A stretch of DNA of 64,000 bases from Octopus bimaculoides (GCF_001194135.2 NC_068984.1:37689607-37753606); one strand, 5' to 3'. Positions 12,916 to 63,129 are shown, counted from the first letter of the stretch. Notes: generated by a model from the letters alone, not told the origin. Numbers and translations: made by a program.

Positions 12916-13719
12916 ATTATTCCAAGTTTGTCTCTAATTCTTAGTCCAATGTGCTAATACTTTCTTTTACGACATCAACAACTTCTTTTATTATTATTTC
13001 CCGCCAACCCGTCTCATAAATCTGAATTGGTCGAGTCAGTAGTCATCAGACCTGATCTTATAATTCTGCCTAGCTCCCAAAACCTAAAATTATTATCGAT
13101 TACCACAATTACAAATTCAGACGAGTAATAGTATTGCGAAATCTAATAATATAGACAGAATTCTCAAATAATATATCTGATATACAAGTTGTTCCAAATG
13201 AAACTACTATTAGTAGTAATAGGATAGATTTACAAAGTTAATAATGATGGCATTTACTATTTAACATCAAAATTTTAAAATGAAAAAAAAAATGACTTCA
13301 TTCCAAGTAAGAAAATGAAACAAATTCTAGTACTGAATATTTAATAAATTGTTTTTATTGTTGTTGTTGTTGTTGCTGCTGCTGCTGCTGCTGTTGTTGT
13401 TGTTGTTACTGTTGTTATTGCTGGGTTTTTTACATAGTGACTGTTGTTATTTTGCAAATGATGTTTGTTGTTCTACTTGTTAACATTGCTATTGATAAGA
13501 TCTTAAGAAATTGTTTTGTTTGAAGTCTTGGTTAGGTAATTATTTCGTTTCTTCTGGCATTTTTGATTTTCTTAGTCATTTTAACAACTGCTTCTTGTTC
13601 TTATTCTTGTTATTGTTGAAGTTGTTGTTGTTTATCTCTGAGATAGCATTAAATGAACAGACTTATAATCAAAGAAGTTCCACCCGTGACCATTCCATCT
13701 TTTTGTAACTATATTGTCC

Positions 13720-18071: not shown

Positions 18072-21000
18072 NNNNNNNNNNNNNNNNNNNNNNNNNNNNN
18101 NNNNNNNNNNNNNNNNNNNNNNNNNNNNNNNNNNNNNNNNNNNNNNNNNNNNNNNNNNNNNNNNNNNNNNNNNNNNNNNNNNNNNNNNNNNNNNNNNNNN
18201 NNNNNNNNNNNNNNNNNNNNNNNNNNNNNNNNNNNNNNNNNNNNNNNNNNNNNNNNNNNNNNNNNNNNNNNNNNNNNNNNNNNNNNNNNNNNNNNNNNNN
18301 NNNNNNNNNNNNNNNNNNNNNNNNNNNNNNNNNNNNNNNNNNNNNNNNNNNNNNNNNNNNNNNNNNNNNNNNNNNNNNNNNNNNNNNNNNNNNNNNNNNN
18401 NNNNNNNNNNNNNNNNNNNNNNNNNNNNNNNNNNNNNNNNNNNNNNNNNNNNNNNNNNNNNNNNNNNNNNNNNNNNNNNNNNNNNNNNNNNNNNNNNNNN
18501 NNNNNNNNNNNNNNNNNNNNNNNNNNNNNNNNNNNNNNNNNNNNNNNNNNNNNNNNNNNNNNNNNNNNNNNNNNNNNNNNNNNNNNNNNNNNNNNNNNNN
18601 NNNNNNNNNNNNNNNNNNNNNNNNNNNNNNNNNNNNNNNNNNNNNNNNNNNNNNNNNNNNNNNNNNNNNNNNNNNNNNNNNNNNNNNNNNNNNNNNNNNN
18701 NNNNNNNNNNNNNNNNNNNNNNNNNNNNNNNNNNNNNNNNNNNNNNNNNNNNNNNNNNNNNNNNNNNNNNNNNNNNNNNNATATATATATATATATACAT
18801 GTATGTCTATATGTATATATGTGTGTGTATGTATGCATGTATGTTTTATATATGTGTGTATGTGTGTATGCTTTATATATATATAGTATAGCATAGTTTA
18901 GTATAGTATAGTATAGTATAATATTATATAGTATAGTTTCAATATATTATGAATTTATTGTGAACAGCTTTCAGTACATCCTTTTAACTTAATTATTCAA
19001 ATTCATGATTCATAAAATTGTTGCATTTTGAGGGTGAGGTCGTAATTATTACTTTTTGTGTTGTTAATTATGCAAATTATCCTTACTGAAAAAGAAACGT
19101 ACTTAATTAGTAATCTTGATACACAAATCACAGTACACTTTAGACCGGGATTCAGTTTACTAGAAAACGAGTGTATCTTTTCCAGGATGAAAAACCTTGA
19201 GTGATCGGATTACAGCATTAGTTAAGGAGGCGGAAGATGATGGACCATATTCCAACAGAGATATGGCTGGGGGAAATCGGAAATTATACTCTATTAAGTT
19301 TAACAAAAACATATTAGAGGACAATTAGTTAATTAGAGAATGATTTATAAACAATCCTTCTTTGTTAATGTATTAGCCACAGGAAAGTTTACTGCCTTGG
19401 TCATTTATTGGTGCTAAATGAATGTTGTTAGACTCGAACATACAAAACCCGATAACCGCAGCTAGCATGTTGATTTTGTGCCATCTATGGAGCAAGAGGT
19501 CGGCAATTTATATTTTCTCACTGGTATTACATTGTGTACCTGGTAAACTTAATTTTCGGCGAACTATAAATAGATGCTTTGGAAAGGCGCAGATCACACT
19601 TGTATACAGTTAAGTCACCGAAAAATTGATATCTTACGTTTACAAAAAGAAAGTCACAGACAGTATTTTTAAGCGATTAACTTAATCCTGACCTGATATC
19701 TATTTTAGCAAGCCAAGAAAAATAAAAGACAAAGTCGACTCCATCAGGATTTGAACGCAGAGCATAAAGATAGGAAAGAATGTGGCATTTTATCTGATAC
19801 TCTACAGGTTCTTCTCCGCTCCTCACCACCTGCTGATGTTTCTAGAATTGAATTAGTGTTTCATTAGCTTGGAGAGCCAAGCTCAAATCAAGGCATGAAC
19901 CAAAACGTCAACTTCAATAATTTCGGTTATTGAGTTAATGCGTTGTTAGTGACAATGTTAAAGCCTCTACAGCTATTGTCCTTAGCTCTGCTGCAGTTTC
20001 ATGACAAAATTTGTTTATCATTGGAGTCGTATCAGGTCAACTATAATTATTTCTATCCGAAGAAAATGCGTTTAACAGCACGTTTAAATGGTTTGGAGAC
20101 CTGACTACGACGTCTATCGAAATGGTTGTTGTAAATTTGTCGGCTCTATTGGAGAATTCTATAGTGAAACTGTTCTGGAGCAGAGGGATTGGTTTTAATA
20201 CCGAATATCATATGAATAATACAGTATGAGAAGCTAAAAAAGATCGGATGTTACCGAGATGTTGATGCAGATAAGCAAGCCTAGGGAAGTAAGTGAGCCA
20301 ATATTTTGTTGACAGCTTTTGGTGGGCTATTCCTATATTCTTACATTCTTTTACTCACGTTCGTCTTCCTCCCTCTTCTTTCGCCTTTCTTCTTTCTCTC
20401 ATTCTCACTCCCACTTCCTCATACACAAACACACGCATCACCGCCATCACCAACAGGGTACACCAAATACTTTATAGCAAAGCAGGAAATATAACTTTCC
20501 ATATAGATCTATCGTATGTGAGATATGAAATCTTCAATCTTGAAACCTTCAAACATTTGCCGGAAACACAAACCACATAAATATATTTTATGATATCAGT
20601 TTAGAATTACGTCTCCAAGGCTGAGCTTCAAATTTCGATTGTGTTACGAAGCTTGGCTTTTGAATATCACAGTTGTAATATTAAGCTTGCAAATGTGTGC
20701 ACTGGTGCATGTGACTGCAATTGTGAATATCCATATCGGTGTTCGCTAACGGAAAAATCTGAAAACTTGATTTGTACATTGGCAGTATCGGAAGGATTTA
20801 ATATTTCAAGTCATGTTAAGCCAAATGAACCTGCCACGTGACAGAAACGATAAAAGGACATCAAGAGAAAGCAAAATTAGGTTGGTTGTAATACAAACCC
20901 TTTAAATGACATGTAGTGATAAGTGGTTGAGCCAATGTATCTTTTGAAAGCTGCATATAAAACACGTCCTTCTTACATGTATATTTCGGTTACGAAATAA

Positions 21001-23410
21001 TTACATTGAATGTTTCCCGGTGGACGAAATTTGCCAAATAAAAAAGAATCTTTAAATGTCTATTTTTAAAAACCAATTATGTAATATTTAAGCTATTTAA
21101 TCCTCTGAAGACAAGCGTGTTTAATAAGTTTGCAATACAGATATATTTCTTTCTAGCTATGAATGGCATGTAAATACACTTCATCCTTTTTATTAAAAAC
21201 TAGTAAGCTATTTAGGCTATTCAAATACCACATTGATTCTATGTTGTCTTATATATATATATATATATATATATNNNNNNNNNNNNNNNNNNNNNNNNNN
21301 NNNNNNNNNNNNNNNNNNNNNNNNNNNNNTATATATATTCCAATCCGAATGATCAGATATGTCTATAAATATCATGATAGCTGAAAGACAATGTTTCTTC
21401 GTTTTAGATAGAGCATAGTAACGGTTTAATATATATATATATATATTAAAATTTAATGAAAGTATTCACAAGATTAATTTATATATATTCCGTCAACTTG
21501 AGAAATACTTTCTTTTAATTCTTTGTGCTTTACGACAGGTTCTATTCGAGGAATGAGAAGAACATGGAAGATAAAATTGGTCCAGAATGTTGAACAGTAA
21601 AATAAATAAATGTGCAATTTTACAATAAAATGTCAAATAATTTAAGTGTGTGCTTCTATGTTGCAGCAGAATCATACTAGTTAAGAGATAAGCTGATGAA
21701 GTACTTTAGTCACTGACTTTATACGTTAATCTAAGAAAACGAAGGCATAGCTTTGTTGTTTCGAAGTTCACGTCGAACCCACTGTATGGTCTCTTTGGCG
21801 AGTATCGTCTACAATTGCTTTGGATTGACTATAGCCTTGAGAGCGTAATTTGGCCGGCAGAAACCGTGTTGAAGACTGTTAGATGGACCGTTCTTATCCT
21901 TAATCTGTACACAACTTAGTGCCATCATCTATGTCCCTAATGAATCCCACTCTGCTGAAAACATTCAAACCAGGCATTTAGTTTCATAATAACTTCCTCA
22001 GTCCCGTCCATCCTCCCTCAAGTCAAGCAGGCCCTGAAAAGAGTTATGAACGCTGTCCTCTCTACTTCGACTAAGCCATTAAAAATGGACCGTTTCTTCT
22101 ATGTCCCATGATAATTTTAGTTATAAGTTTATCATGGGAGATATTTAACTACAATCAGCCAATCGTTTAAAATGCATATTCGAAAATGTTTTATGAGAGA
22201 AAATAAATACATAAATAAACGTGTGAGTGGTGTGGTAAATTTTTTGACTCATTTTAATGACTTCGTTAGAGGAAGAAAGGCAACACACATGACCCTTTTC
22301 AGAACCGCTATGACTGGTGAATGGAATGGAGAAGCTTACCCTTAAACTGAAGACCGGACCTGAATGCTTGCAACAGAGCAGATGCCGCTAAAATTGATTT
22401 CTAATTTTGGCACAAGGCCAGCAATTATGGGGGGGGGGAATAAGTCGATTACGTCGACCCCAGAACTTAACTGGTACTTATTTTATCTACCAAGAGAGGA
22501 TGAAAGGAAAAGTCGACGTCGGTGGTGTTTGAACTCAGAACATAAAGACGGGCAAAATGCCACTACGCGTTTTGCCCGGCGTACTAACGATTCACCCAGC
22601 TCGCCGTAAGGATGCCACTAAAATTACCAACGGACAAAGCAGCGCTTTTAAAGAAAATGTATCAGTAAAGAGTTCGCTTTCATATAGTGTTCTTACACAT
22701 AACAGCCGAAAGTGGGTTATTTTCTGTACTGTGCCATACCTCTTCCAAGCTTATCCTTTGTCTAAAGTTGACCAACGTCCAGTATTTCCCCTTTGGCTTG
22801 CGACGCTAGCAAAGCATAAGTTGCTGTTAATGGTAATATTTTTCTCAATGGTATTTAAGTTCCCATTTTCACTTCAGAAGCTGTAACTGTCAATGTTTAT
22901 AAATGACCCCGAATATTTCTTTATCTTTTTTGCTGTTTATCTTTCTAATAATTTTTTAAATCTGTTTTTGTTATTTTAACTTAAAAACAGATTTTTAAAA
23001 ACTCTTGAGGCTGTGTTCTCTGTTATCAACTTTGTGGTAAGCCTCTGCTTCTGTTACCTCAGAAGTGACCAAATGAAACGAATATAATGAACAAAGTAAA
23101 ATGAATGGTGGCTGCAATGAACAAAATTAAACGGGTGTTTGCAAACACAAAAATATATGTTGAATACAAATGTCTAAAGCCGTTTCTTCTTTCCTATCCA
23201 CAGGAAAATGGATGGTCGGTTGAATATAGAAGGAAGCTTTTTATGGATAAGAATTTTTTTTTTTCTCCTGAAAACGTATTCCTGCAGAAAAATATCTTCT
23301 AAACGAAGCACTATGAAAACACGTGAGCACACGGTAAACAACAACAACAATAGCACCAATAATGTGTATATATANNNNNNNNNNNNNNNNNNNNNNNNNN
23401 NNNNNNNNNN

Positions 23411-23469
<59 letters not shown>

Positions 23470-23803
23470 AGTTCGATTGTCTTTTCAGTTTTGTTTCCAT
23501 GAATTTCCATAATTAATTGTTCTTTCAAATTATCTTCGCTTAATTTTGTAATTATCTCTGCTACGATAATGATTTCTGATATTTATTGTTCGAGCGAGCG
23601 GAATAGTGAATGAGAGGGGAAAGCTGTTACTAAGCCGGCATTGTTAGTAGGTAGGTTTCCATTCTGGCCTTAAGGTCACACTTACTTTCTAGTGTCCATT
23701 CTCAATTTCATTGTCATGTGTCTAAATATGAAATCATAATTACATAGGTTGAAAACGAATTTTTGCTTGATCATGTCTCTCTCTCCCTCCTCATTCTCTC
23801 CTT

Positions 23804-47400: not shown

Positions 47401-47511
47401 ATGGCAACTGGTAAATCTTTAAGAAAGGATCATAAATTATCAGAAAATTTGGCATTACTGCCATCTGAACAGAAAGAATTCGAAAAATTTGCTAATGTCG
47501 AGTCTTCTAAA
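47401..47511 (+). CDS. NIFK: NIFK (MKI67 FHA-interacting nucleolar phosphoprotein, Nop15-like) exon 1
   Basis: MATGKSLRKDHKLSENLALLPSEQKEFEKFANVESSK (37 codons), then a phase-0 donor AAA|GTAAGC. LALLPSEQKEF resembles the NIFK N-terminal motif. Confidence 0.8.
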
Positions 47512-48668: not shown

Positions 48669-48791
48669 GTAACTAGGCGTGGTGTTGTTTATCTTGGTCA
48701 TATCCCCTATGGATTCTTTGAGAACCAAATGAGAGCGTATTTCAGTCAATTTGGCAAAGTGACTCGCCTTAGACTATCACGGAGTAAAAGA
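48669..48791 (+). CDS. NIFK: NIFK exon 2 (RRM, RNP2)
   Basis: Acceptor TTTTCTAAAAG|; [41 protein letters not shown]; donor AGA|GTAAGT; phase 0/0. Confidence 0.93.
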
Positions 48792-49672: not shown

Positions 49673-49781
49673 ACAGGAAAATCCAAAGGTTTTGCCTTCA
49701 TTGAATTCTTGAGTGGAGATGTGGCAAAAATTGTAGCTGAAACAATGAATAACTATTTGTTGTTTGAAAATTTACTAAAAT
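49673..49781 (+). CDS. NIFK: NIFK exon 3 (RRM, RNP1)
   Basis: Poly-T tract plus CAG|; [36 protein letters not shown]; donor T|GTTAGT, phase 1. Confidence 0.95.
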
Positions 49782-50689: not shown

Positions 50690-51149
50690 AAAATATACAT
50701 ACTCATATTTTGAGTTCTGCTTTTCCTGTTTACATCAACATATATTATATATAGAGAGGGTGGGATGTAAGGTGGTGACTCCTTGTCTTAGGATAGTTGT
50801 AAATGAGTGTCACCAGCATACAACAGTGTCCTCCATTTCCAATCTTTGATGAAAACATGCCTCGCCATACCTTACTTGGTGTTTTAAAGTTGAATGCCAT
50901 CTCCTTCCTTTTCACTGTGGTGGCAGATGTTCTTATAGTACCATCAGAACTAAAGATATTCTGTTACAAAACTTCTGTGTGTGTCTGTATATATCACCTT
51001 TTTTTCTATGTTGGGTTGGTATTTGAAGTGAGAATGAACAGAACCAACAATGTTGTCTCTTTCAACAGCATAAAGGCCCCATTACAACACATTTTTAGGA
51101 AACAGACAGGTGTCATTAATCAAATCCAATCTGTTGTGGCTGGGAGATA

Positions 51150-51512: not shown

Positions 51513-51730
51513 GTAGGTTCATTCCACCAGAAGAAGTGAAACTTAATTTATTCAAAGGATGTAACAGAAAATTCACACTACCAAAATCTCATATTATTTC
51601 CAGAGATCGACACAACTCAACTAAATCTACTAAAGTAATTCGATATAAAACAATTCGCTCCCTGAAAAGGCTCAATAAAAGGGTGGAAAAGCTTAAGGAT
51701 ATAGGTGTTGAATTTGATTCAAGCAACTTG
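51513..51730 (+). CDS. NIFK: NIFK exon 4
   Basis: Acceptor TTCCTCCAG|; (C)RFIPPEEVKLNLFKGCNRKFTLPKSH...LKRLNKRVEKLKDIGVEFDSSNL; donor TTG|GTAAGT; phases 1 and 0 fit the neighbouring exons. Confidence 0.92.
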
Positions 51731-52038: not shown

Positions 52039-52912
52039 CAAGGTCTGATCAATAAGTATCTGTACTGTTGCCATAGTAATGAAGCTAAGGCACGCAGTGA
52101 AGCTGCTTGGCATAGGCTGACATTGAACTCTGCTGTGCATGCAAACTAAGTTTTTACGTTCTAGCTCACTTCTGCTGTTTACAGCAGTGCTTGGAAGGAA
52201 AATGTGTAGTGTGTGATCATCGCATTGACCCATGACAGTGAAAGTTGTCATGGCAATACCTGCTCAGAGGCATATGCAAAGTTGCAGAAAGTGTATGGAG
52301 AAGAGTGTATGAGCCACACACAAGTGTCCAAGTGGTTCAGACGTTTCCAAGAAAGCTGGAAAAAATGTCAATATTGATGAATGTTCTGGTAAACCTGCAA
52401 CCAGCAGAACTGAGAAAAACTTCACAGATGTTTGTGCAGCTGTGGTGGGGAAACTGTCGAATCACCATCTGTGAATTATGAATGGTTGTGCAGATTAGTT
52501 CAGTTTGGTCCATTGTCGCTGAAGATTTGGGTAGGAGACACGTGTCTGCCAAGTTTGTTCCAAAACTGCTTTCAGCTAACCAAAAAAACACTTGGGTTTC
52601 AGTTGCACAAGATCTCCCTGATTGTGCCAAGAACGATGGAAACTTTTTGAAAACTTTGCGTAGGCCTCTGAGCAGGTATTGCCAAGATTTTGGCAAAATT
52701 TGATGCAGATTCTCTGTCATGGTCAATACAACAATCACACGCTACATGCCTTCCTTCCAAGAACTGCTGTAAACAGTGGAAGTGAGCTAGAACGTTAAAA
52801 CTTAGCACACATGCACAGCAAAGTTCAAGGCCAATTTGTCATGTGGCTTCATTCTGCATGCTTTAGCTTCATTACTATGGCAACAGTCCAGATACTTATT
52901 AATCAGACTTCA
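52039..52912 (+). mobile_element. Complete non-autonomous mariner with long inverted arms (about 230-250 bp) and TA TSD, in NIFK intron 4
   Basis: TA|CAAGGTCTGATCAATAAGTATC ... GATACTTATTAATCAGACTTCA|TA. The internal frame reads CSEAYAKLQKVYGEECMSHTQVSKWFRRFQ...WSIVAEDLGRRHVSAKFVPKLLS. Confidence 0.9.
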
Positions 52913-54454
52913 TATATATACACATACATACATGAGACATTGTTTTACAGCTGGATATCCTTCTTCTCATAAGCCTGACCTGTATTTTCAAGTAAGGGAG
53001 TTTTTCTGCTACTTGCCATCTAAAGTGCAGAATTACTAGATGGTTTACTGACAGGGAAATGTCAGTACTTTTAGCTCAGCTTCATGCAGTATGTAAAAAT
53101 TAATATAGCCGTATGCACTGTATGTGTGTATATATACACACATGTGGGGATGATTGTGTGGTTAAGTTTGTTTTGAAACCAATGTGATTGAAGGCTATAT
53201 CCTCTGTATGGACATTATTGGCAAGTGGCCTGTACCATAATGCTGTGAGTCAACTAATACTACGTGAGTGAAATTGATGAACAGAAACTGAAGAAGCAAG
53301 TCGTTTTTGTGAGTTCATATTCGTTCACTGTCTGTAAACAACCTTGGTATCATTTGCTTGCAATTTCCCATTGAAGCATGTCCAGATTACTTGATATATT
53401 ATGTGAATCTTTGATCTTCGTAAACAAAAGTCTTGTTTGAATGGTGGTGTTTTCGATTCTCCACATAACCATCTCTGGGCTTTTCATTGTTCTTAGACTT
53501 GAGGGTTATTACCGTAACTATAAAAGAAAAGACTTGCCCAAGGTACTGTGTAGGACTGAACTTGAAACCATATGGTTTGAAAGCAAGCTTCTTAACCACA
53601 AGACTATGCCTGCAAGCATTGTGCTTGTGTTACTGAGATAAGCTAAATTAATATTGGACATCCAAACAACTCTTTCTCCTCATTTGTCAGTCTGATTCTT
53701 AATTTATTGACACCTGCAGGTGATGTATAAGCAATATAAAAGGTAATTAAAAAAACCCTAATCAGAAGACGAGCCACATAACTAGTTTCTAAATTCATAA
53801 CAAAGTGTCTCAATTCTGATGCCTAACTCCGCAAACAAATCAACTCCTTACCCATTGTGAACAAAAATATCTCTAATATTTGCAGTGGAGAAGGCAGCAA
53901 GTTGACATAATCATTAGAACACCAAGCAAAATGCTTGGCAGCATGTCATCCATTTTTACATTCTGAGTTCAAATTCCATTGTGGTTGACTTTGCCTTTCA
54001 TCTTTTCAGGGTTGATAAAATAACAGTTGAGCACTGGGGTCAGTGTAATCAACTTACCTCTTTGTCAAATTCAGAAGCATATCAGTTTAACTGTGTTTTA
54101 TCACAAATATTGCATTGTGCTGCTTCAAATATTGCTGGTTGCACATTTTAAAGTGATTATTTTTATATGTATATATAATCTTATTTTCCATACTTATGTC
54201 ACTGAAACCTAGGGCTTAGGCTGCATGTAGTTTGACTCCTTCCCTCATCCAACCAAGACATAAAAGACAAAAACAAAGCTACTTTGATTTAAACTCAGGA
54301 TGTTAAGCAAAAATATTTACTGTATTCAATCCATTGTTTCTGGTTAACTCAAACAGACAAGAGTTTGAAATAGTCGAAAAATAAGTCAGGATTTGGAGCA
54401 TTTTCAATAATGGATAGAATATTTCTTTTAACTTTTTTCTTTTTATTTTTTCAG

Positions 54455-54790
54455 GAAAAATCAATCAAGGCCAGATTAGATAAGCAGCTATCTGTAGCTA
54501 AAAAAGAAACTGATGACAGTTCAGAGATGAAGAAAGATGAGTCCATACTTTCTGCAGGTGATACCAGTCATTTGACTAATGAAACTGACTCCAAAACTGG
54601 TGGCAGCATATTATTACTGGAAGATGACATCAGTGATGATGAGATACAGATAAAAACGCCACCAAACTGTGTCAAACGCTCAAAGCTAAACCAGCTTTCC
54701 AAAAAAGAACTCAGGAAGGTTAAGACCATAAAAACAGCCAAAGCACCCAGCTATAGATTATTCCCAAAACCAAAAAAGGTTAAAGAATAA
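54455..54790 (+). CDS. NIFK: NIFK proximal last exon (5a), completing a 298-aa protein
   Basis: Poly-pyrimidine tract plus TCAG|, phase 0; EKSIKARLDKQ...LLEDDISDDEIQIKTPPNCVKRSK...KPKKVKE*. The DDEI..K.P..CVK block resembles the vertebrate NIFK C-terminal region (recalled). Confidence 0.88.
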   Translation, partial: EKSIKARLDKQLSVAKKETDDSSEMKKDESILSAGDTSHLTNETDSKTGGSILLLEDDISDDEIQIKTPPNCVKRSKLNQLSKKELRKVKTIKTAKAPSYRLFPKPKKVKE

Positions 54791-54805
54791 TTATGAAAGT
54801 TTTAC

Positions 54806-54811
54806 AATAAA
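54806..54811 (+). terminator. Polyadenylation signal AATAAA after exon 5a
   Basis: AATAAA 16 nt after the stop codon, followed by a T-rich stretch. Confidence 0.6.
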
Positions 54812-57800
54812 AATTTTAAAACTAATTTCTTCTCTTTAACTTTTTTAACAACTTTTTTTGTAAAATTGTCCAAGTCAAACTACTATAGAAAAACTTGGGC
54901 AATTTTACAAATCTCAAAATTTATTGGGTCATAATAATGTGCTGAAATGGCTTTTATTTGTTTAAATGAACCTCTGGTATGACGATTGCTGTTAAGCTGA
55001 TATTTTAAGGGATTTTGTTGAATTTTTAAATTTTAACTAGGGGGCATTGCAGTCTCTGGGGTTCTTCAATTATACTATTTTTTTGGTTTTCTGAAAGTGA
55101 ATTTGACTATTTGAGTTTACTCATTTTATTGAAGGGTTTTTTTTTTTTTATATGGATAGTTGTAGACAGTGTCCATAGTTCATCTAGACATTCCCAACTG
55201 GTGAGTTGTAATGGGGTTGATATTCAGCTTGAACTTCTAGTGGATATCTATAGTGAAAACATAGTGGAAGCTTCAGTGGGATACACCTTTGGAAAGAAGA
55301 GATTCAGTATAGAGAAGAGTGAGCTCCATGAGGAGTTGCAAGAGGCAGAGAGTGCTTGATTGGCTAGGTTGTAAGCAGGATTCGTAGCTGCAGTAGGAGG
55401 GAGGAAACTAAGCACATTGATAGGCTTGTAGTTGTAGCTTGTTAGCAAAGAACTGCTGAACAGGAAGGCTTTCTTTTTACTTGAACCTAGAATCTAGTAG
55501 CAGCTACACTGTTCTTGATATGTGGAGTATAGCAGTCATCATCATCATCATTTAACATCTGTTGTCTATGCCAGCATGGGTTGGATGGTTTGACCAGGGC
55601 TGCACCAGACTCCCAGTCTGATTTGGCATGGTTTCTATGACCTTCCTAATGCCAACCACTCCAAGAGTGTAATTGGTGCTTTTATGTGCCAATTGTGTGA
55701 CACCAGTATCTCCCACAACTACGATTTCACTTGGCTTGAAATTATTTTTTTATGGTTCTAGTAGTCAGTGTTGGAATAGCAATGCCTACACCCTTTTGTA
55801 TAGAATGGAGGAAGAAACCAAGACTTGCATCAGAGTAAATTTCATTGAAGGTGCCAAAAGACCAGGTAATACTGTTAAATTGCATTAGTGTCCCATCTAA
55901 GTACAATGGACAAAGTTCTTATCTCTTCAATCTCACCTGTAAGGTTGTGGTATACTATTTCTTGTCATGATGCTCTTCAGTGTTGTTGAACTCAGGACCA
56001 TGTGATTGAGAAACAAATTTCATAACCACAGGGTCATGTCTGGCCATTGCCTTCAAAGAGGTAACTTTACATTTGTAATGCAATTTTGGTAATGTTATGC
56101 TTATAGTTGCCAGAAAAATTCATCAGAGACTGTGAGGTCAAGCATCCCTAACTGTCCAAACTTTTGACTCTTCAAACTGTATTTTAAGAAAATAGTGTAA
56201 TTTAACAGAAAGTTGGGTTAGAACAACAATTCATAATTAGTATAGCTTACTGAGCTACTATGTATAAAACACTTTCTTTCAAGCAGTCTAGAAGCTGTTC
56301 ATTTTATATGTCTCTTAGCTGTACAACAAGCTCCTATATATGGATTTTATGTCAAGAAATATCATTAGTTGATCTGTTTAATGGCAGTGAAACCTTAACT
56401 TAGCACATATCCTTATGATTCTTTTATAAATTTTAGATGTTTTCATGCTGTTGGAGTATATATCTTCTCAGATGGATCTACTTTCTACAAACCAAAGTTC
56501 AACCATGAAATAAGATCATAACTTGACACACTTGTTTTTGAGCAAGTAGGATCTCAAATCATTTTATTTACTCTCACTGATTAACCAAATTATATCTTTC
56601 TTACTTAACATTTCTAACTTGCCTTCATTACACATTACAGCTCTATATAATTATATATATATATGAAAGAGTGTGTGTTTGAGTTAAATTTGACAATTTA
56701 ATTTTTTAAGGTTGATGTATTGGAGAACATAATGATTAAAGTTACAGTTGAGAAAAAGTTAACTGAATGGGAAACTAGAAGCCATCTGAATATTGGAAAA
56801 GAATTCCCTGTATCATGATGATTCTTACCAGGTATCATGATATCAACATCATTGCTAGTTAATGCTCTGTGAACACTGTAAAATGTGACAGGGAAAGCTG
56901 TAGCCAGCAGGTGTTCTGACTCCACACAGCCTTAGGCTCAATTCAGATGGCATGTTAAGCTACTGGAGACTAGTCAATCCCTGGTTGTAGAGGATTGTTG
57001 ATGGAAGGACATATGTGTGACAGCAGGTTTCAGCTCTTTGCCATACCTCTAGAAAGAATCAGAAGTGATTATCAGAGAATTTCTGACCTAATTCCCCCAA
57101 TTGTAATCTCATGGATTACAATGTGTGGGGCACAGTTAAGAAAGACCTTCTGCTCTGCCTGAAATTCCAAGGCCGAGATCGAGGAGGCTTTCAGAGGTCT
57201 TCTCAAGGATGCAGTGAGGAATGCATTCACCAGATTCCAGAGTTATCTTGAGGCGCTGATGGTGGCAACTTTGAGTTAACTGTTATCTCCCAACCATAAT
57301 CTAGTAATTCTTTTTGATTCCTTAAAATACTTTTACTTTTGGATGGGATATTATATTTTCTTTTCCTTTTATGCATACTGTCAAATTTACCCAAAACAGC
57401 TTGTACATGTGTGTGATTTCATTCTCACAAATAAGGAAAAGCCTGTTGACAAGTATTTCAAATTCTAAGATTTTTGAGTAACATTTGTGATTTTTTCCTA
57501 TTGAGGAATGAAATATTAACAACTTTTGAAATTATATCTAACCTACTTTTTAAATACTGTTTTCTTCAGTTTCATTCTAATACACTAATTGACTTGATAA
57601 GAAAAGTTTATTGTCACTATAAATATTTCTGTACCTGAAATGAAAGATGTGCCTCATCTATTTAATGTTGGAAAAAAAAAATACTTAGTGGTCTGTGAAT
57701 GTACAACAGAAGAATACTACTAATGCTCCTGCATTTTATACAGTGCACCAAACATACACATCTGTGATCATATCCATGTTACTTTGATATCTTGCAGTAT

Positions 57801-58429
57801 TGTGTTTCATTTGAGAGGGATACTAGCTCGATACTGTGTCTTCTTCCTTGAAAAAAGATACGTCTACTCATAGTAACCATGCACACTTTGAACAGACCTC
57901 TGATCAAATGTATTTCAGCTGTAGTCATGTTGTGATTTCAATTCAAAACATAAAGGGACATAACTGGATACTTCAAAATATTTTGATCAACTGATGTACT
58001 AACTCTTTTTTCCACCTTTATCAGGGCAGACAATAGGTATTTTTGTTAGAGAATGGTTTATAAGTGATATAGTCAACCCAAGTAGCTTACTATTCATTTT
58101 GTTTGTTTTATTTTTGACACTAGTCTCGCATTATCATTCTAAAATTACTTTTAGCCCCAAATTAATGAAGCATTAACTTTAGCCATGTAAAAAGTATTTG
58201 TTTTTGGTCTTTACTATCAATGCCACCATCACTATTACATCACTTATTACCAGTAAAAGCAATTATATATCTCTAATGTCACAAAGTTATCTTTTTCTAA
58301 TTTGGTAGTCTGTAAGTACTTCTCATCAGACAACTGAAGGCTTCATTTCAGTCTTGTAAAATATGTTGTTCAGTAACTTCTTGTTCTTGTATATCGCTTC
58401 CGAATGATCCCTCACAGCTGAAAACTTTA

Positions 58430-58560
58430 GTGAAAGTAATAACATTGCACTTGACATCAGGAAAACTTACCATGTCTGACATGTGAATCTTCTAGCTAAG
58501 ATGTCTGGCTAGATTCTTCATATCTCCTACGTCTTGGATTGGAAGAATCTATAAGCCGAG
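58430..58560 (+). mobile_element. Decayed CR1/Jockey-like LINE RT fragment
   Basis: IALDIRKTYHV*HVNLLAKMSG resembles the IALDISKAFDRVWHxxLLAK motif. Confidence 0.5.
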
Positions 58561-60149
58561 ATATTGTGTACATCCTTCAATTAGGACATAACAATGTAAT
58601 CTCTTTCAACAGTATAATGGTCCCATTACAGCACACTTTTAGGAAACATGTGGTACCATTAATGGAATCCACTCTGTTGTAAGCATTCAGAGCAGGTCTG
58701 TGAATAACCCAGGAGTGATGGTTCTTTCTCCTTCCTACATCAGTTTCAGAGGACATGCAGAAATGATTATGCATACAGTCTCTCTTCCTCTAAGCCACAA
58801 ACATATCTATAAGTGGTCTTGTGTCTAGAATGCCTTACAGGACTGGTTCTAAGTTCAAATCCTGACAAAGTCAACTTTGCTTTTCAAACTTTCAGCAGTC
58901 CAGAGTAGTGAGTTGGCAATGGGCAGGATGTCTTACAGCATCTATTTTCGCTCTGTTCATTCTGAGTTCAAATACCAACCCAACATAGAAAAAGGTGATA
59001 TCACTGCCAAGGATTGGAATCCACAGATAGTAAGATTGTGTCAGCAATTTTAAAAGTCAATGGAAAATTAGTTTCCTTAAATCAACAGCCACCACATGTG
59101 TATGTATAGATGAAATGGAAGGGAACAGAACTCAACTCATGATCAAGTAAGACCACTTCCTTAACTTGGAATGTTCATGCAAATGTTCTAAAAACTCACG
59201 GAGTTCCTGTGTGTAAATTTGCTTTGAACGGATGAAGTGTTTCACAGCTCTGAACCCACTTTTCAGTGCAATTAGCTATAACATTAATGGTACAACAGAG
59301 GCTGAGATGGCCAGAAACTAACTGCACTTCAGGTTTTATATATATATATATATATATATACACCCACACACATAAGCATGTGAGCGCATAAGTTCAAGAC
59401 AAGGTGGAAAAAATAGCACTCAAATAGCAGAGATATAGTAAAATAATATTTGAATGAAGCTGGAAAGACTTTACAAATTGTTACTCAGTGTTTCAGCAAG
59501 AAACTGAACACTCATAATACATCATCTTAAATGGGAGATTCCTCATCATCATCATATGTGTGTGTGTGTGTGTGTTTGTTATCACTTATTAAAACTATAT
59601 CTCAAAGATTTGACTTGTTATTTGGAGCTAGGAAATTCTTTAGCTCTGATCTGTTGCAAACAGTACCAAGGTACAAGACCCACATTTGAGTCCTACTCAC
59701 ATCAAAGGGATTGTACTGTTGCTGATATATGCACAATCTAGATTGTATCCAAACAAAGGCTGTTGTGCAGCACAATTCTACCACTTTCTCACAGACAAGC
59801 CATTTCTTTATTCTCTTTTGACAATGCACCTTTGCCCCTCATAACAGCATGAGATGTTTTGGTGCTGCCTGTTAGACATCACTGATTGAACACTAACTTA
59901 TTTGACATCAGACAATTTAATGTCTGTCTCTCACCCTCTATCTATCTCTTTATGTATGTAAACATATTTCTCTGTCTATGTATATGAGGATAGGGAAAGT
60001 GTTAATGTCATTTATGTTCAATTAATAATGTAATACAATGTCTTTTTTCACTCTATCTATATATGTAAGTTTCTGCATGCACATATGTGTGTGTTTGCCT
60101 TGAGAGCCAAAAAGAAATGTTACCCAAATCAGGCTAAATGTCCAGTCAG

Positions 60150-60390
60150 CCATGCCAAATAATCAGCATTGAAACAGCTGCACCGAATTGTCTCATTCCA
60201 TTCAGAACACTGTTCACCACAAATTAGTTTGTTCCCAGACTTGTTTGTCACTTTTGCTATCCCTCATCGCCTTCCAGACTCTGCACTTCAAACACTAGAA
60301 CTAAAACCCTCAAGAATTCTTTCCCTGCTTACATTGTTTCCTAGACACTAACCGACAAGTGTTAAAACTGAATGTTAACAACAGCAATGT
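60150..60390 (+). mobile_element. Decayed 3' end of a CR1/Jockey-like LINE
   Basis: Similar to the better-preserved 63130-63480 fragment (GAATTCTTTCCCTGC...TTTCCTA...AATGTTAACAACAGC). Confidence 0.4.
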
Positions 60391-60840
60391 CACAAGTCCC
60401 AGGGAGACTTCAAAGTACATGGGTACTAATTCCACTTCTCTTCTGTTTTGTACAAAAGAAAATATAACCGTTTTCTAAAAGAATAGTTTTCTACATTTAC
60501 AATTAGACTGACCAATATTTTGTAATTTCTGTTTTCCATTATCTCCGTTTTATGGGAGGCTTCTTTCTTTTTTAAAAATATACATTCCTTTTTGAATGGT
60601 CCCATCTCTGTTGTTAGGTGTTATATTTATTTTGTTTTATGTACTTCTTGTTTAGCCACAGGCCAGCTGAGATCCAGTAAAAACCTATGGAGGGGAGATT
60701 AGTCAATATAGTACCTGACTACACATAAAGATGAGTTAGCAATGACTGCTCAGTCAGTGATCTGGAGATAAATAACAACTGCCTTCAACACTATATAGCA
60801 CTAGAAAATAACATTGATAACTAGCTAGCTACTTTAAACT

Positions 60841-61014
60841 CTCTCTCTCTCTCTCTCTCTCGCTCACACACACTTCTCTTCTCCCCTCCTCTCTCTCTCT
60901 CTCTCTCGCTCACACACACTTCNNNNNNNNNNACACACACTTCTCTTCTCCCCTCCTCTCTCTCTCTCTCTCTCGCTCACACACACTTCTCTTCTCCCCT
61001 CCTCTCTCTCTCTC
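60841..61014. repeat. Minisatellite of about 46 bp, (CT)n-CGCTCACACACACTTCTCTTCTCCCCTC, spanning a 10-N gap
   Basis: Three to four near-identical units, read directly from the sequence. Confidence 0.9.
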
Positions 61015-61237
61015 AACAAACTTTCCTTTTTCTTCTATTAAATATCATTTTTTTGATCCACAGCTTTCCTATAGCTCAATTTTGATTTTATTTTAGTTTT
61101 TACTATTAAATCAAAGAGAGTCAACATGAATAAAATCAAGAGCAATTTAGAAAAGATAAGATCATAAAAACAGCCTAAAATCTCAGTGGGAAAAATTTAA
61201 AGAATAATTTTGAAAATTTGTAATAAAAATAGTTTAA

Positions 61238-61451
61238 CCCTTTCGTTACTGTATTTATTTTGGGATGCTCTGTGTTTCTTTCAATTACTTTAAATATAAC
61301 AAAGAATTTCGTAAAATAGCTTAATTATCATTCAGCTAGTGTTAGGAACATAAATTGTGACAAAGGTTTGGTGGAAGATTTTAATTCAAAACTTATGAAA
61401 ACAAGACATTTGTACTCAGAGCCAGTTTCAGTCGGGTTGGTAACAAAAGGG
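61238..61451. mobile_element. piggyBac-type MITE with TTAA TSD
   Basis: TTAA|CCCTTTCGTTAC ... GTAACAAAAGGG|TTAA (11 of 12 positions match in the TIR; CCC/GGG ends). Confidence 0.9.
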
Positions 61452-61637
61452 TTAACTTAATAAAAAAAATGTAATTTCTTCACTTCAGTATTATTTAGTA
61501 CTTGGTTGTTTGTCTTTTACAATATTAAGACATGGTAAGTTGGATGGTTTCAAGATTTCTTAAGTTATCAAAAATATCTTTTGGTTTCTAATTTGCAAGC
61601 TACCAACAAGCATGCCAACGTGCATTTTTTTTTTTTT

Positions 61638-61688
61638 TACTAACTCTGGGTCTTTTTTTTTTTTTTTACATTTCTTCAGTCTCAGCAG
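61638..61688 (+). promoter_or_regulatory. 3' splice region of the distal exon: TACTAAC branch point, poly-T tract and three in-frame CAG acceptors
   Basis: TACTAAC at 61638-61644, then a T tract, then CAG at 61677-79, 61683-85 and 61686-88, all giving phase 0 with the downstream ORF. Confidence 0.75.
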
Positions 61689-62153
61689 GAAAATTTACCA
61701 AGTGCTATAAGAATGAAAAGCAGGCATGTAATTAAGAAAGAATCCAATAACAGTCAGACACTGAATGAGAGAAATGAAGGTCAAAGGATTAATGACAACA
61801 ATATCATGTTTTGGGAAAATAATCATAATAAACCATTTAACAAGAACATTGCCCTTCATTTTAAAACCCTTGATGATTCTTTTACGATTTCTGCTTCTGA
61901 TGAAAACTATGTGAACGATGAGACCATTTCTGCACACCCTGACTGCTGGATACTCAGTAATACTCCATCTGCATCATCTCGAAATAACAGTTTATATTTA
62001 TTGGAAGATGACAGCAGTGATGATGAAATAATATTGAAAACACCACCAAACTGTGTTAAACGGTCAAAATTAAACACACTTTCTGAAGAACAGCTCGGGA
62101 AAGTAAAAACCATAAAAACAGCCCAGAATCCAAGCTATAAATTATTTCCTTAA
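61689..62153 (+). CDS. NIFK: Duplicated distal last exon (5b) of NIFK, predicted alternative C-terminus (341-344-aa isoform)
   Basis: Open 154-codon frame in phase with the exon 4 donor. 40 of 51 residues are identical to exon 5a over LLEDD...PSYxLFP. No copies of exons 1-4 were found between 5a and 5b. Confidence 0.75.
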   Translation, partial: ENLPSAIRMKSRHVIKKESNNSQTLNERNEGQRINDNNIMFWENNHNKPFNKNIALHFKTLDDSFTISASDENYVNDETISAHPDCWILSNTPSASSRNNSLYLLEDDSSDDEIILKTPPNCVKRSKLNTLSEEQLGKVKTIKTAQNPSYKLFP

Positions 62154-62287
62154 CTAAAATCGTTTTGAAAATTTGACAAAAATACTTTAGCCTTATTTTT
62201 TTGCATTATGATATTATTTAAAACTAATTTTTGAAAGAAAGATATTTTTCTCAGCTATGGAAAGAAAGTTCATTTTAAAATACATTC

Positions 62288-62302
62288 AATAAAAGAAATA
62301 AA
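62288..62302 (+). terminator. Two AATAAA polyadenylation signals after exon 5b
   Basis: CAATAAAAGAAATAAAAC followed by a T-rich downstream element. Confidence 0.6.
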
Positions 62303-63129
62303 ACATTTTGGTTTTTTTTTTCTTTCTTTTTATTTTAATTTATCTTTCCTCACTATACTAAAGTTTCAAACTTGGTAAGCGTTCATTAAAGGGAGGTAAC
62401 TTTTATTGGCCAAAACCGGAAAAATTCATCACAACCTTTTTCAGCATGATATCCATCATGTGTATATGTTTGTGTTCCATATATGTATATACGCGCACAC
62501 TCATATATAGATACGTTTATAATCAGGAACCATTCTGAAGTTGAGCCTAGAATAAAATTGCATCATCTCGGATGATAAGTAAAAATCAACTTCTACAGAA
62601 ACATTCTTGTCTATTGTAGAGGTGATCTTCATGTGAAAAAAGCTCATAGATGCTTGATCTCGAAATCTGTACCAAGAGTCAGTGTATGCTGTGGAAAAAA
62701 AATTACAATGAATAATAATGTTTAATATTGTTCACAAACATTATATGTACACACTTAATTAACTTTTGATTATTCTAGCAAGTAACAAAAAGATATTTTG
62801 GTTGCCTGAACAAGCATATCAAAGTGAGAAACTCTTAGTAACAACAGAATGAATTGTCAGCTTTGAATAAATCTATAAATACATAGCATCATCACCATTG
62901 TTACCACAATTTTATGTCCAATTTCTCTGTTGGTATTAAGTGGACAAAGCTTCACATTCCAAGTCAGTTCTTGTTTGAAGGCACTGCCTTCTTAGACAAG
63001 CCAGAAGATCATATCTTACTTGTATATTTCATTTTTACCTTAGTTTTAACAGCCATTGTTCCTGCTAACACCTACCACATTGCAGAGTGTACTGCATGGC
63101 TCTCAAAGTCAGTCAACTTAAAAACCAAA

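Follow-up and report, generated by a model that had tools for sequence, protein, structure and literature searches.

Can a gene for a core ribosome-assembly factor carry two alternative ends, the second a copy of the first? The question is raised by a stretch of 64,000 nucleotides of the Octopus bimaculoides genome (GCF_001194135.2, NC_068984.1:37689607-37753606; hereafter the window), which maps to chromosome CM046604.1 and holds the gene NIFK. NIFK/Nop15 is a conserved and normally invariant factor of 60S assembly. Some 7 kb beyond its annotated terminal coding exon (exon 5a, 54455-54790, on the plus strand like all NIFK features given below) lies a second, homologous exon, here called 5b (61680-62153). 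We consider it very probable that 5b is a real and old duplicate of the last exon that has been selectively maintained as coding sequence, and somewhat probable that it serves NIFK as a distal alternative 3'-terminal exon. The explanation as a whole, in which an old tandem duplicate of the terminal exon has been kept translated in octopods as a distal alternative terminal exon, is the one we favour, with moderate confidence.

A second copy of the last NIFK exon

Exons 5a and 5b lie adjacent on the same strand of one gene and share a 162-nt match of 77.8% identity (BLASTP E = 4e-30). At the core of the match is a block of 51 codons that runs from LLEDDISDDEIQIKTPPNCVKRSKL to LFP in 5a (54614-54766) and from LLEDDSSDDEIILKTPPNCVKRSKL to LFP in 5b (61998-62150). 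Within it, the two copies agree at 119 of 153 nucleotides and at 40 of 51 residues; 14 of these 40 residues are specified by different codons, among them the pairs CTG/TTG, GTC/GTT, CGC/CGG and CCC/CCA. The homology as a whole spans the first codons (GAAAA...) to about 45 nt beyond the stop, into the 3' untranslated region. Exon 5a has 111 codons followed by TAA and reads from EKSIK to KPKKVKE, and 5b has 157 codons counted from its first acceptor AG (154 from 61689), within a frame that is open from 61644 to 62150 and closed by TAA at 62151-62153. The 5b stop is the AAA (Lys) codon of PKPKKVKE mutated to TAA, by which the basic KPKKVKE tail was lost; what is left of the tail and of the former poly(A) signal lies, in decayed form, downstream. 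From its sequence we infer only that the lost tail resembles a basic localisation signal.

The signals expected of a terminal exon surround the 5b frame. Its 3' splice region (61638-61679) comprises a TACTAAC branch point (61638-61644), a T-run and a first AG at 61678-61679, with further AGs at 61684-61685 and 61687-61688, and all three AGs are in phase 0 relative to the donor of exon 4 at 51730, as is the acceptor of 5a. Downstream there are two distal AATAAA signals, at 62288 and 62297 (62288-62302), the second of which is kept in Octopus sinensis and Octopus vulgaris. The proximal signal of 5a (AATAAA, 54806-54811) is kept in both of these species and in Argonauta. Ahead of the block, the N-terminal part of 5b has 103 codons against 53 in 5a, is Asn-rich, is not a repeat within the window and would stay open by chance, at its own composition, with P = 2.7e-4. 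An earlier note on this DNA, made from the sequence of the window alone, had described the coordinates, phase, TACTAAC, T-run, 154-codon frame, AATAAA pair, the residue and codon counts of the block and the loss of the basic tail, all of which we reproduced. Its account of the 5b N-terminus as about 50 residues longer and Asn-rich also stands, but the statement that this part is not alignable is only partly true, as BLASTP extends a weak similarity back to residue 8 of 5a, which places the roughly 50 additional residues at the 5' end of 5b.

The identity of the gene is given by its product. Exons 1 (coding sequence 47401-47511, from the ATG to the phase-0 donor AAA/GTAAGC), 2 (48669-48791, first half of the RRM), 3 (49673-49781, RNP1 half of the RRM, phase 1 at its end) and 4 (51513-51730, phase-0 donor TTG/GTAAGT), joined to 5a, encode a 298-residue protein that matches at 100% identity the annotated NIFK-like protein of O. 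bimaculoides, named 'MKI67 FHA domain-interacting nucleolar phosphoprotein-like'. The protein combines a single RRM of the NIFK/Nop15 type (Pfam RRM_1, E = 2.5e-13) with full-length similarity to NIFK orthologs, reaching E = 5e-43 against human NIFK from pre-60S structures (8FKP) and E = 3e-19 against yeast Nop15; orthologs were found throughout Metazoa and Fungi.

The spacer between the two exons, roughly 6.9 kb long in the window (54.8-61.7 kb), also holds a third copy of the exon-5 3' end and 3' untranslated region (61125-61245). This copy retains the AAAGAATAA tail and an AATAAA, is about 65% identical to both 5a and 5b, and is dead, with an in-frame TAA and a 21-nt deletion; it pictures neutral decay at the NIFK locus. 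A search of the spacer around 5b for additional NIFK-like exons found no RRM exons. Directly after the dead copy a 222-bp element has been inserted (61234-61455), with 16-nt terminal inverted repeats and TTAA flanks (TTAA, then CCCTTTCGTTAC to GTAACAAAAGGG, then TTAA), which looks like a miniature inverted-repeat transposable element of the piggyBac type.

Octopod counterparts and selection on the shared block

The 5b exons of O. sinensis and O. vulgaris are intact: they share the stop, branch point, T-run and acceptor of O. bimaculoides 5b and have 82-83% amino acid identity to it over 157-158 residues. A HMMER scan with the 5b peptide returned two relevant proteins, O. bimaculoides NIFK itself (P0001) and GAB1599129.1 of Argonauta hians (P0121, 563 residues); two other hits were long low-complexity proteins and were discarded. 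The A. hians locus (L004) shares synteny with Octopus. Its 5a is complete, stop and AATAAA included, and is followed about 5 kb further on by a 282-codon open exon that ends in SLYLVEDDSDDEVTFGTHTKCIKRSELSRLSKKQLLKVKTIATVNCPSHRVFPDLNI and a stop. The acceptor of this exon is in phase 0 and has the same CAGCAG context as in Octopus, and its N-terminal part of 231 codons was never open in 200,000 shuffles (P(open) < 5e-6). The frame is therefore intact in four species, and the disruption of 5b in relatives that the earlier note had considered was found in none of them. The A. hians N-part (22782-23474 of the locus) contains an internal tandem repeat (DDDVSC[KN]KAVKDITLCRDDD, twice) and long runs of Asp/Ser; in 5b, the spacer part grows through in-frame repeat expansion.

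Whether Argonauta and Octopus inherited 5b from one event was judged from the block. At synonymous sites the Argonauta 5b is nearest to Octopus 5b (pS, the proportion of synonymous differences, 0.46-0.51) and further from its own 5a (0.79), and compared with Octopus 5b it gives an omega, the ratio of nonsynonymous to synonymous divergence, of 0.33-0.39 (p = 0.008-0.02). A neighbour-joining tree of the block recovers a single old duplication with 62% bootstrap support, against 38% for a grouping of Argonauta 5a with Argonauta 5b, which lends weak support to a single duplication that would predate the Argonauta/Octopus divergence. Given these values, the orthology of Argonauta 5b rests partly on shared characters, namely SLYL before the acidic run, the CAGCAG acceptor, E(N)L(N)P at the start of the exon, the loss of the basic tail, and position. 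A word-indexed search with the Argonauta protein was dominated by RRM and low-complexity words and returned no further cephalopods by which the duplication could be dated beyond Argonauta. With octopus NIFK as the query, the same index failed to return the Argonauta ortholog, and with the 5b peptide it gave no hits, not even the octopus's own 5a protein; it is lossy, and its negative result for the 5b peptide carries no weight. In the snail Gigantopelta aegis, a NIFK-like protein of 414 residues (P0004) holds the motif SDEEISFKTPP twice, in a record flagged LOW QUALITY PROTEIN, and molluscs may therefore have duplicated this NIFK module on more than one occasion.

Selection was measured with Nei-Gojobori estimates of omega between species and Fisher p values. 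For the 5b block, comparison of O. bimaculoides with the other two Octopus species gave an omega of 0.09 (five synonymous and two nonsynonymous differences; p = 0.005) and 0.15 (p = 0.01), and the 5a block, at 0.35, lay above these. The paralogous blocks have diverged to a dS of 0.56-1.14, at an omega of 0.12-0.32 (p = 1.7e-7 in O. bimaculoides). Paralogs of one species are no more similar at synonymous sites than paralogs of different species, which makes recent gene conversion unlikely as the cause of the conservation. The block of both copies is under purifying selection, and to this extent the earlier note's claim of selection on both copies holds. It does not hold for the N-terminal part of 5b, which has an omega of 1.0-1.6 between Octopus species, with the frame still open and one 3-nt indel, and which behaves as a freely evolving spacer that remains in frame.

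The first 20 residues of the block hold the motif EDxSDDEIxxKTPPxxVK (also given as EDxSDDEIxxKxPxxCVK), which is conserved in gastropods and other molluscs, a brachiopod and vertebrates. The 5b version (EDDSSDDEI) is nearer to the lophotrochozoan consensus than the version in 5a.

Proposed routes from NIFK transcripts into exon 5b

Under the explanation we favour, most transcripts would use the poly(A) site of 5a (AATAAA 54806) and yield the 298-residue protein. Where this site is bypassed, the 5b acceptor would be transcribed (TACTAAC 61638, T-run, first AG 61679), 5b would be joined, in phase, to a phase-0 donor further upstream and translated, and the transcript would end at the AATAAA at 62288 or 62297, so that polyadenylation at the proximal site would compete with splicing to 5b. 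Two donors could serve: that of exon 4 (51730), with 5a skipped and a product of 341-344 residues, or the in-frame site within 5a (AAG/GTTAAG, 54716-54724; junction 54718/54719, phase 0), with a product of 429-432 residues that contains both motif copies, as in the Argonauta model. We weigh the two about equally, and neither by itself as likely. Either product would have at its end the 5b copy of the acidic NIFK motif and KVKTIKTA..LFP, without KPKKVKE, and may differ in function from the 298-residue form.

Two NIFK models in relatives use the 5b acceptor, which therefore belongs to NIFK transcripts and not to a different upstream gene, another outcome that the earlier note had envisaged. The O. 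vulgaris model (P0003, 210 residues) ends in SHSTNE joined to VSAGKFTKCSKNENQACN and a stop; it exits 5a at a strong cryptic donor, GAAG/GTGACT, in phase 1 and enters 5b at the first AG. Since the O. vulgaris annotation was built from Iso-Seq and RNA-seq data through StringTie, TACO, PASA and EVM (PMC10700109), this junction is probably read-derived. The model is without exon 3, and hence without the RNP1 half of the RRM, because a 100-N assembly gap (12956-13055 of the O. vulgaris locus, L003) removes that exon, and it stays in frame through an alternative exon 2 donor (A/GTAAAA). The cryptic donor in the middle of exon 5a is present at 18329/18330 in O. vulgaris (L003) and at 21476/21477 in the O. 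sinensis locus (L002); O. bimaculoides is without it and reads GAAACTGACT there. The A. hians model (P0121) joins CGAAAG/gtaaaa (LRK/VKT) to cag/CAGGGA, both in phase 0, and contains both motif copies. The O. bimaculoides site at 54718/54719 is homologous to this donor; it is a weak match to the consensus and a putative donor in Octopus. Both models that reach 5b thus depart from donors inside 5a and not from exon 4, and, to judge from phase, entry in phase 0 is possible from either. The four annotations disagree: 5b is missing from those of O. bimaculoides and O. sinensis, mis-framed in that of O. vulgaris and fused after 5a in that of A. hians, and the NIFK annotations in these species need transcript-based curation.

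Several observations weigh against a maintained coding alternative end. NCBI annotates one product, of 298/299 residues, in O. bimaculoides and O. sinensis, and neither the 14 hypothetical full-length isoforms from three species (entering 5b from exon 4 or from within 5a) nor the three Met-started 5b open reading frames from the same number of species are present in a collection of 15 billion proteins. The P0003 junction is out of frame with the conserved reading frame and leads to a stop after 18 residues, and the Argonauta junction between 5a and 5b may be purely predicted, given that the A. hians annotation was made with GINGER, which combines ab initio predictions with those from RNA-seq and homology (PMC12682272). 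The in-frame donor within 5a is weak in Octopus, reading AAG/GTTAAG in O. bimaculoides and AAA/GTTAAG in O. sinensis and O. vulgaris. The selection tests are based on about 32 synonymous sites. At the nucleotide level, 5b (90-95% identity between the Octopus species) is conserved no better than the non-coding DNA around it (86-96%), which makes nucleotide conservation uninformative as an exon signal, and retention of the open frame over the three Octopus species is by itself not significant (P about 0.4) and was not used as evidence of selection.

How 5b would be reached divides the two readings that survive best. In the first, which takes the proposal of the earlier note as the only route, 5a and 5b are mutually exclusive last exons and 5b is always spliced directly to exon 4; this we regard as possible and well short of probable. 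Translation of the computed junctions reproduced the lengths then given (341, 342 or 344 residues, against 298 annotated), and the splice is phase-compatible: the exon 4 donor is strong and in phase 0, as are all three 5b AGs, the same holds in Argonauta, the quality of the 5b acceptor is very good, and the opening codons of 5b (GAAAAT...) are similar to the start of 5a. What the direct splice lacks is a supporting model or protein, as the junction of exon 4 with 5b occurs in none of the collections and both 5b-reaching models begin within 5a; in addition, the strong 5a acceptor is transcribed about 7 kb earlier, so that splicing of exon 4 to 5a would usually be done first. In the second reading, 5a is a composite exon of the immunoglobulin mu type, terminal in some transcripts and internal in others, where the LRK/VKT donor leads to 5b and to an isoform with two motifs, and this is the only route. 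We give it a similar minority weight. P0121 has precisely such a structure, a homologous GT is present in all the Octopus species, and the NIFK-like protein of Gigantopelta is annotated with two motif copies. Against it, the Octopus donor is poor (GTTAAG has no G at +5, with an A at -1 in O. sinensis and O. vulgaris), conservation of the GT is uninformative because it is dictated by a Val codon, the junction in Argonauta may have been predicted ab initio, and proteins of this type are absent from the collection.

A third account, which we consider improbable, holds that 5b is a non-functional relic whose splicing is read-through noise and whose open frame and low omega reflect chance or past function. 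It can draw on the neutral N-terminal part of 5b, on nucleotide conservation no greater than that of the flanks, on the frame shift in the sole Octopus model that uses 5b, on the single product annotated by NCBI and on the degraded motif of Argonauta 5b, where KTPP has become GTHT. At the dS observed between the paralogs, however, neutral decay would have ruined the block and the frame, as it has in the dead third copy; moreover, the block retains an omega of 0.09-0.15 within Octopus, and two lineages whose synonymous sites are saturated have kept frames of 154-157 and 282 codons open. A stand-alone protein of about 146 residues, made from a transcript of its own from the Met at 61712 and carrying the NIFK C-terminal motif only, is in our view very unlikely. 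This Met is conserved in the three Octopus species, the Argonauta exon has a Met-Met close to its start, and selection on the block alone is silent on the carrier transcript, but no promoter or upstream exon was found, the spacer is otherwise unconserved with Argonauta, and the Met-started frames are absent from the protein collection. The start of the open frame also coincides with a conserved set of branch point, T-run and AG, the layout of an internal or terminal exon, and two NIFK models splice into it.

The idea that 5b is an assembly duplicate or a mis-join across an N gap, which has in its favour only that a 10-N gap (60923-60932, in a CT/CA tandem repeat) does sit between 5a and 5b, can be dismissed, as the earlier note had argued, since the copies are just 78% identical and the layout is repeated in three other independent assemblies, two of them gap-free in the interval. 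The gap touches neither exon, being some 750 nt upstream of 5b, and no frame crosses it. The O. sinensis locus contains zero N and the O. vulgaris locus zero N between 5a and 5b, and in both the order is 5a, an alignable spacer of 6.8-7.3 kb, 5b and a convergent BPI gene; the same order and spacing in these gap-free loci show that the adjacency of 5a and 5b is real. A processed pseudogene is also ruled out, the copied unit being the last exon only, at 78% identity and in four assemblies. Aligned to Argonauta, the Octopus spacer yields just two segments, the 5b block and the coding end of BPI, and the absence of other conservation speaks against a further complete copy of the gene. Within Octopus, the spacer is best conserved over an indel-free stretch around the 222-bp element (61002-61459), where O. 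bimaculoides is 94.5% identical to O. sinensis/O. vulgaris.

Downstream of 5b, the convergent neighbour of NIFK is an LBP/BPI/CETP gene whose coding sequence ends near 62644. Its minus-strand AATAAA (62334-62329) and the poly(A) signals of 5b on the plus strand (62288, 62297) are no more than about 50 nt apart, so that the two transcription units would end almost head-on. Elsewhere at the locus, intron 4 carries a fragment of a Mos1/mariner transposase HTH_48 domain (52210-52374, plus strand; Pfam E = 1.8e-10), the window holds more than 15 copies of a degenerate repeat family that matches 53891-54060, and a second degenerate repeat is common to 51074-51147 and 58500-58679. In an Rfam scan of 47-64 kb, no gathering score was reached.

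Relation to known systems

The motif that both exons carry can be placed beside a human fragment of known binding. In human NIFK, the octopus motif aligns with residues 251-276 (ELNDDDKDDEIVFKQPISCVKEE) and with the final 19 residues of the peptide crystallised with the Ki-67 FHA domain (2AFF chain B; PF12196, hNIFK_binding), where both octopus block starts (LLEDDxSDDEIxxKTPPNC) align with ELNDDDKDDEIVFKQPISC. The octopus matches fall below curated thresholds (5b reaches E = 0.0036 and 17.2 bits against a Pfam cutoff of 25, 5a is not reported, and the PDB matches have E = 0.06-1.4), and the upstream phospho-Thr part is unrecognisable in octopus, where binding of an FHA protein is putative. If the explanation we favour is true, a maintained alternative C-terminus of NIFK would represent rare isoform diversity in the core machinery of ribosome biogenesis and would point to a function of the deeply conserved acidic motif (EDxSDDEI..K.P..VK) outside vertebrates. 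We suggest, tentatively and with considerable doubt, that octopods since before the Argonauta/Octopus split may have kept a second, differently tailed NIFK module resembling the Ki-67 FHA-binding one, and that bypass of the proximal poly(A) site would swap or double this module and drop KPKKVKE, giving a regulated and possibly tissue-specific variant of a 60S factor; a tissue-specific role of 5b in ribosome biogenesis is speculation.

The closest counterparts are the Argonauta protein GAB1599129.1 (P0121) and the O. vulgaris model P0003, which concern the same gene, with the same LBP/BPI/CETP synteny, the same 5a and 5b exons and the same 5b acceptor. They differ from a direct splice of exon 4 to 5b in that 5b is entered from inside 5a; in addition, Argonauta has a 282-codon 5b with a degraded motif, and the O. 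vulgaris model is frame-shifted and without exon 3.

Beyond octopods, a literature search on duplicated alternative last exons returned nothing specific. Exon duplication that feeds an alternative 3' end is nevertheless a known mechanism, and the general surprise is modest. Tandem exon duplication as a source of alternative exons is said to have been described by Kondrashov and Koonin in 2001 and by Letunic, Copley and Bork in 2002. The NIFK case resembles it in having neighbouring homologous exons in one gene and on one strand, with compatible phase, ancient divergence and purifying selection on both. In the classic form, the exons are internal, equal in length and mutually exclusive, with alternative use; in NIFK a terminal exon was duplicated together with its stop and 3' untranslated region, the copies differ in length by 50 codons, and their alternative use is putative.

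Alternative last exons coupled to alternative polyadenylation are exemplified by calcitonin/CGRP, and composite internal/terminal exons by the secreted and membrane forms of immunoglobulin mu. NIFK shares with both a proximal terminal exon with a poly(A) site followed by a distal exon with an acceptor, a stop and poly(A) signals, and with the immunoglobulin mu type also an in-frame donor-like site inside the proximal exon, 5a. In calcitonin/CGRP and immunoglobulin mu the alternative ends are unrelated and their use has been shown experimentally, whereas in NIFK, where alternative use is proposed, the two ends are paralogs that carry the same motif.

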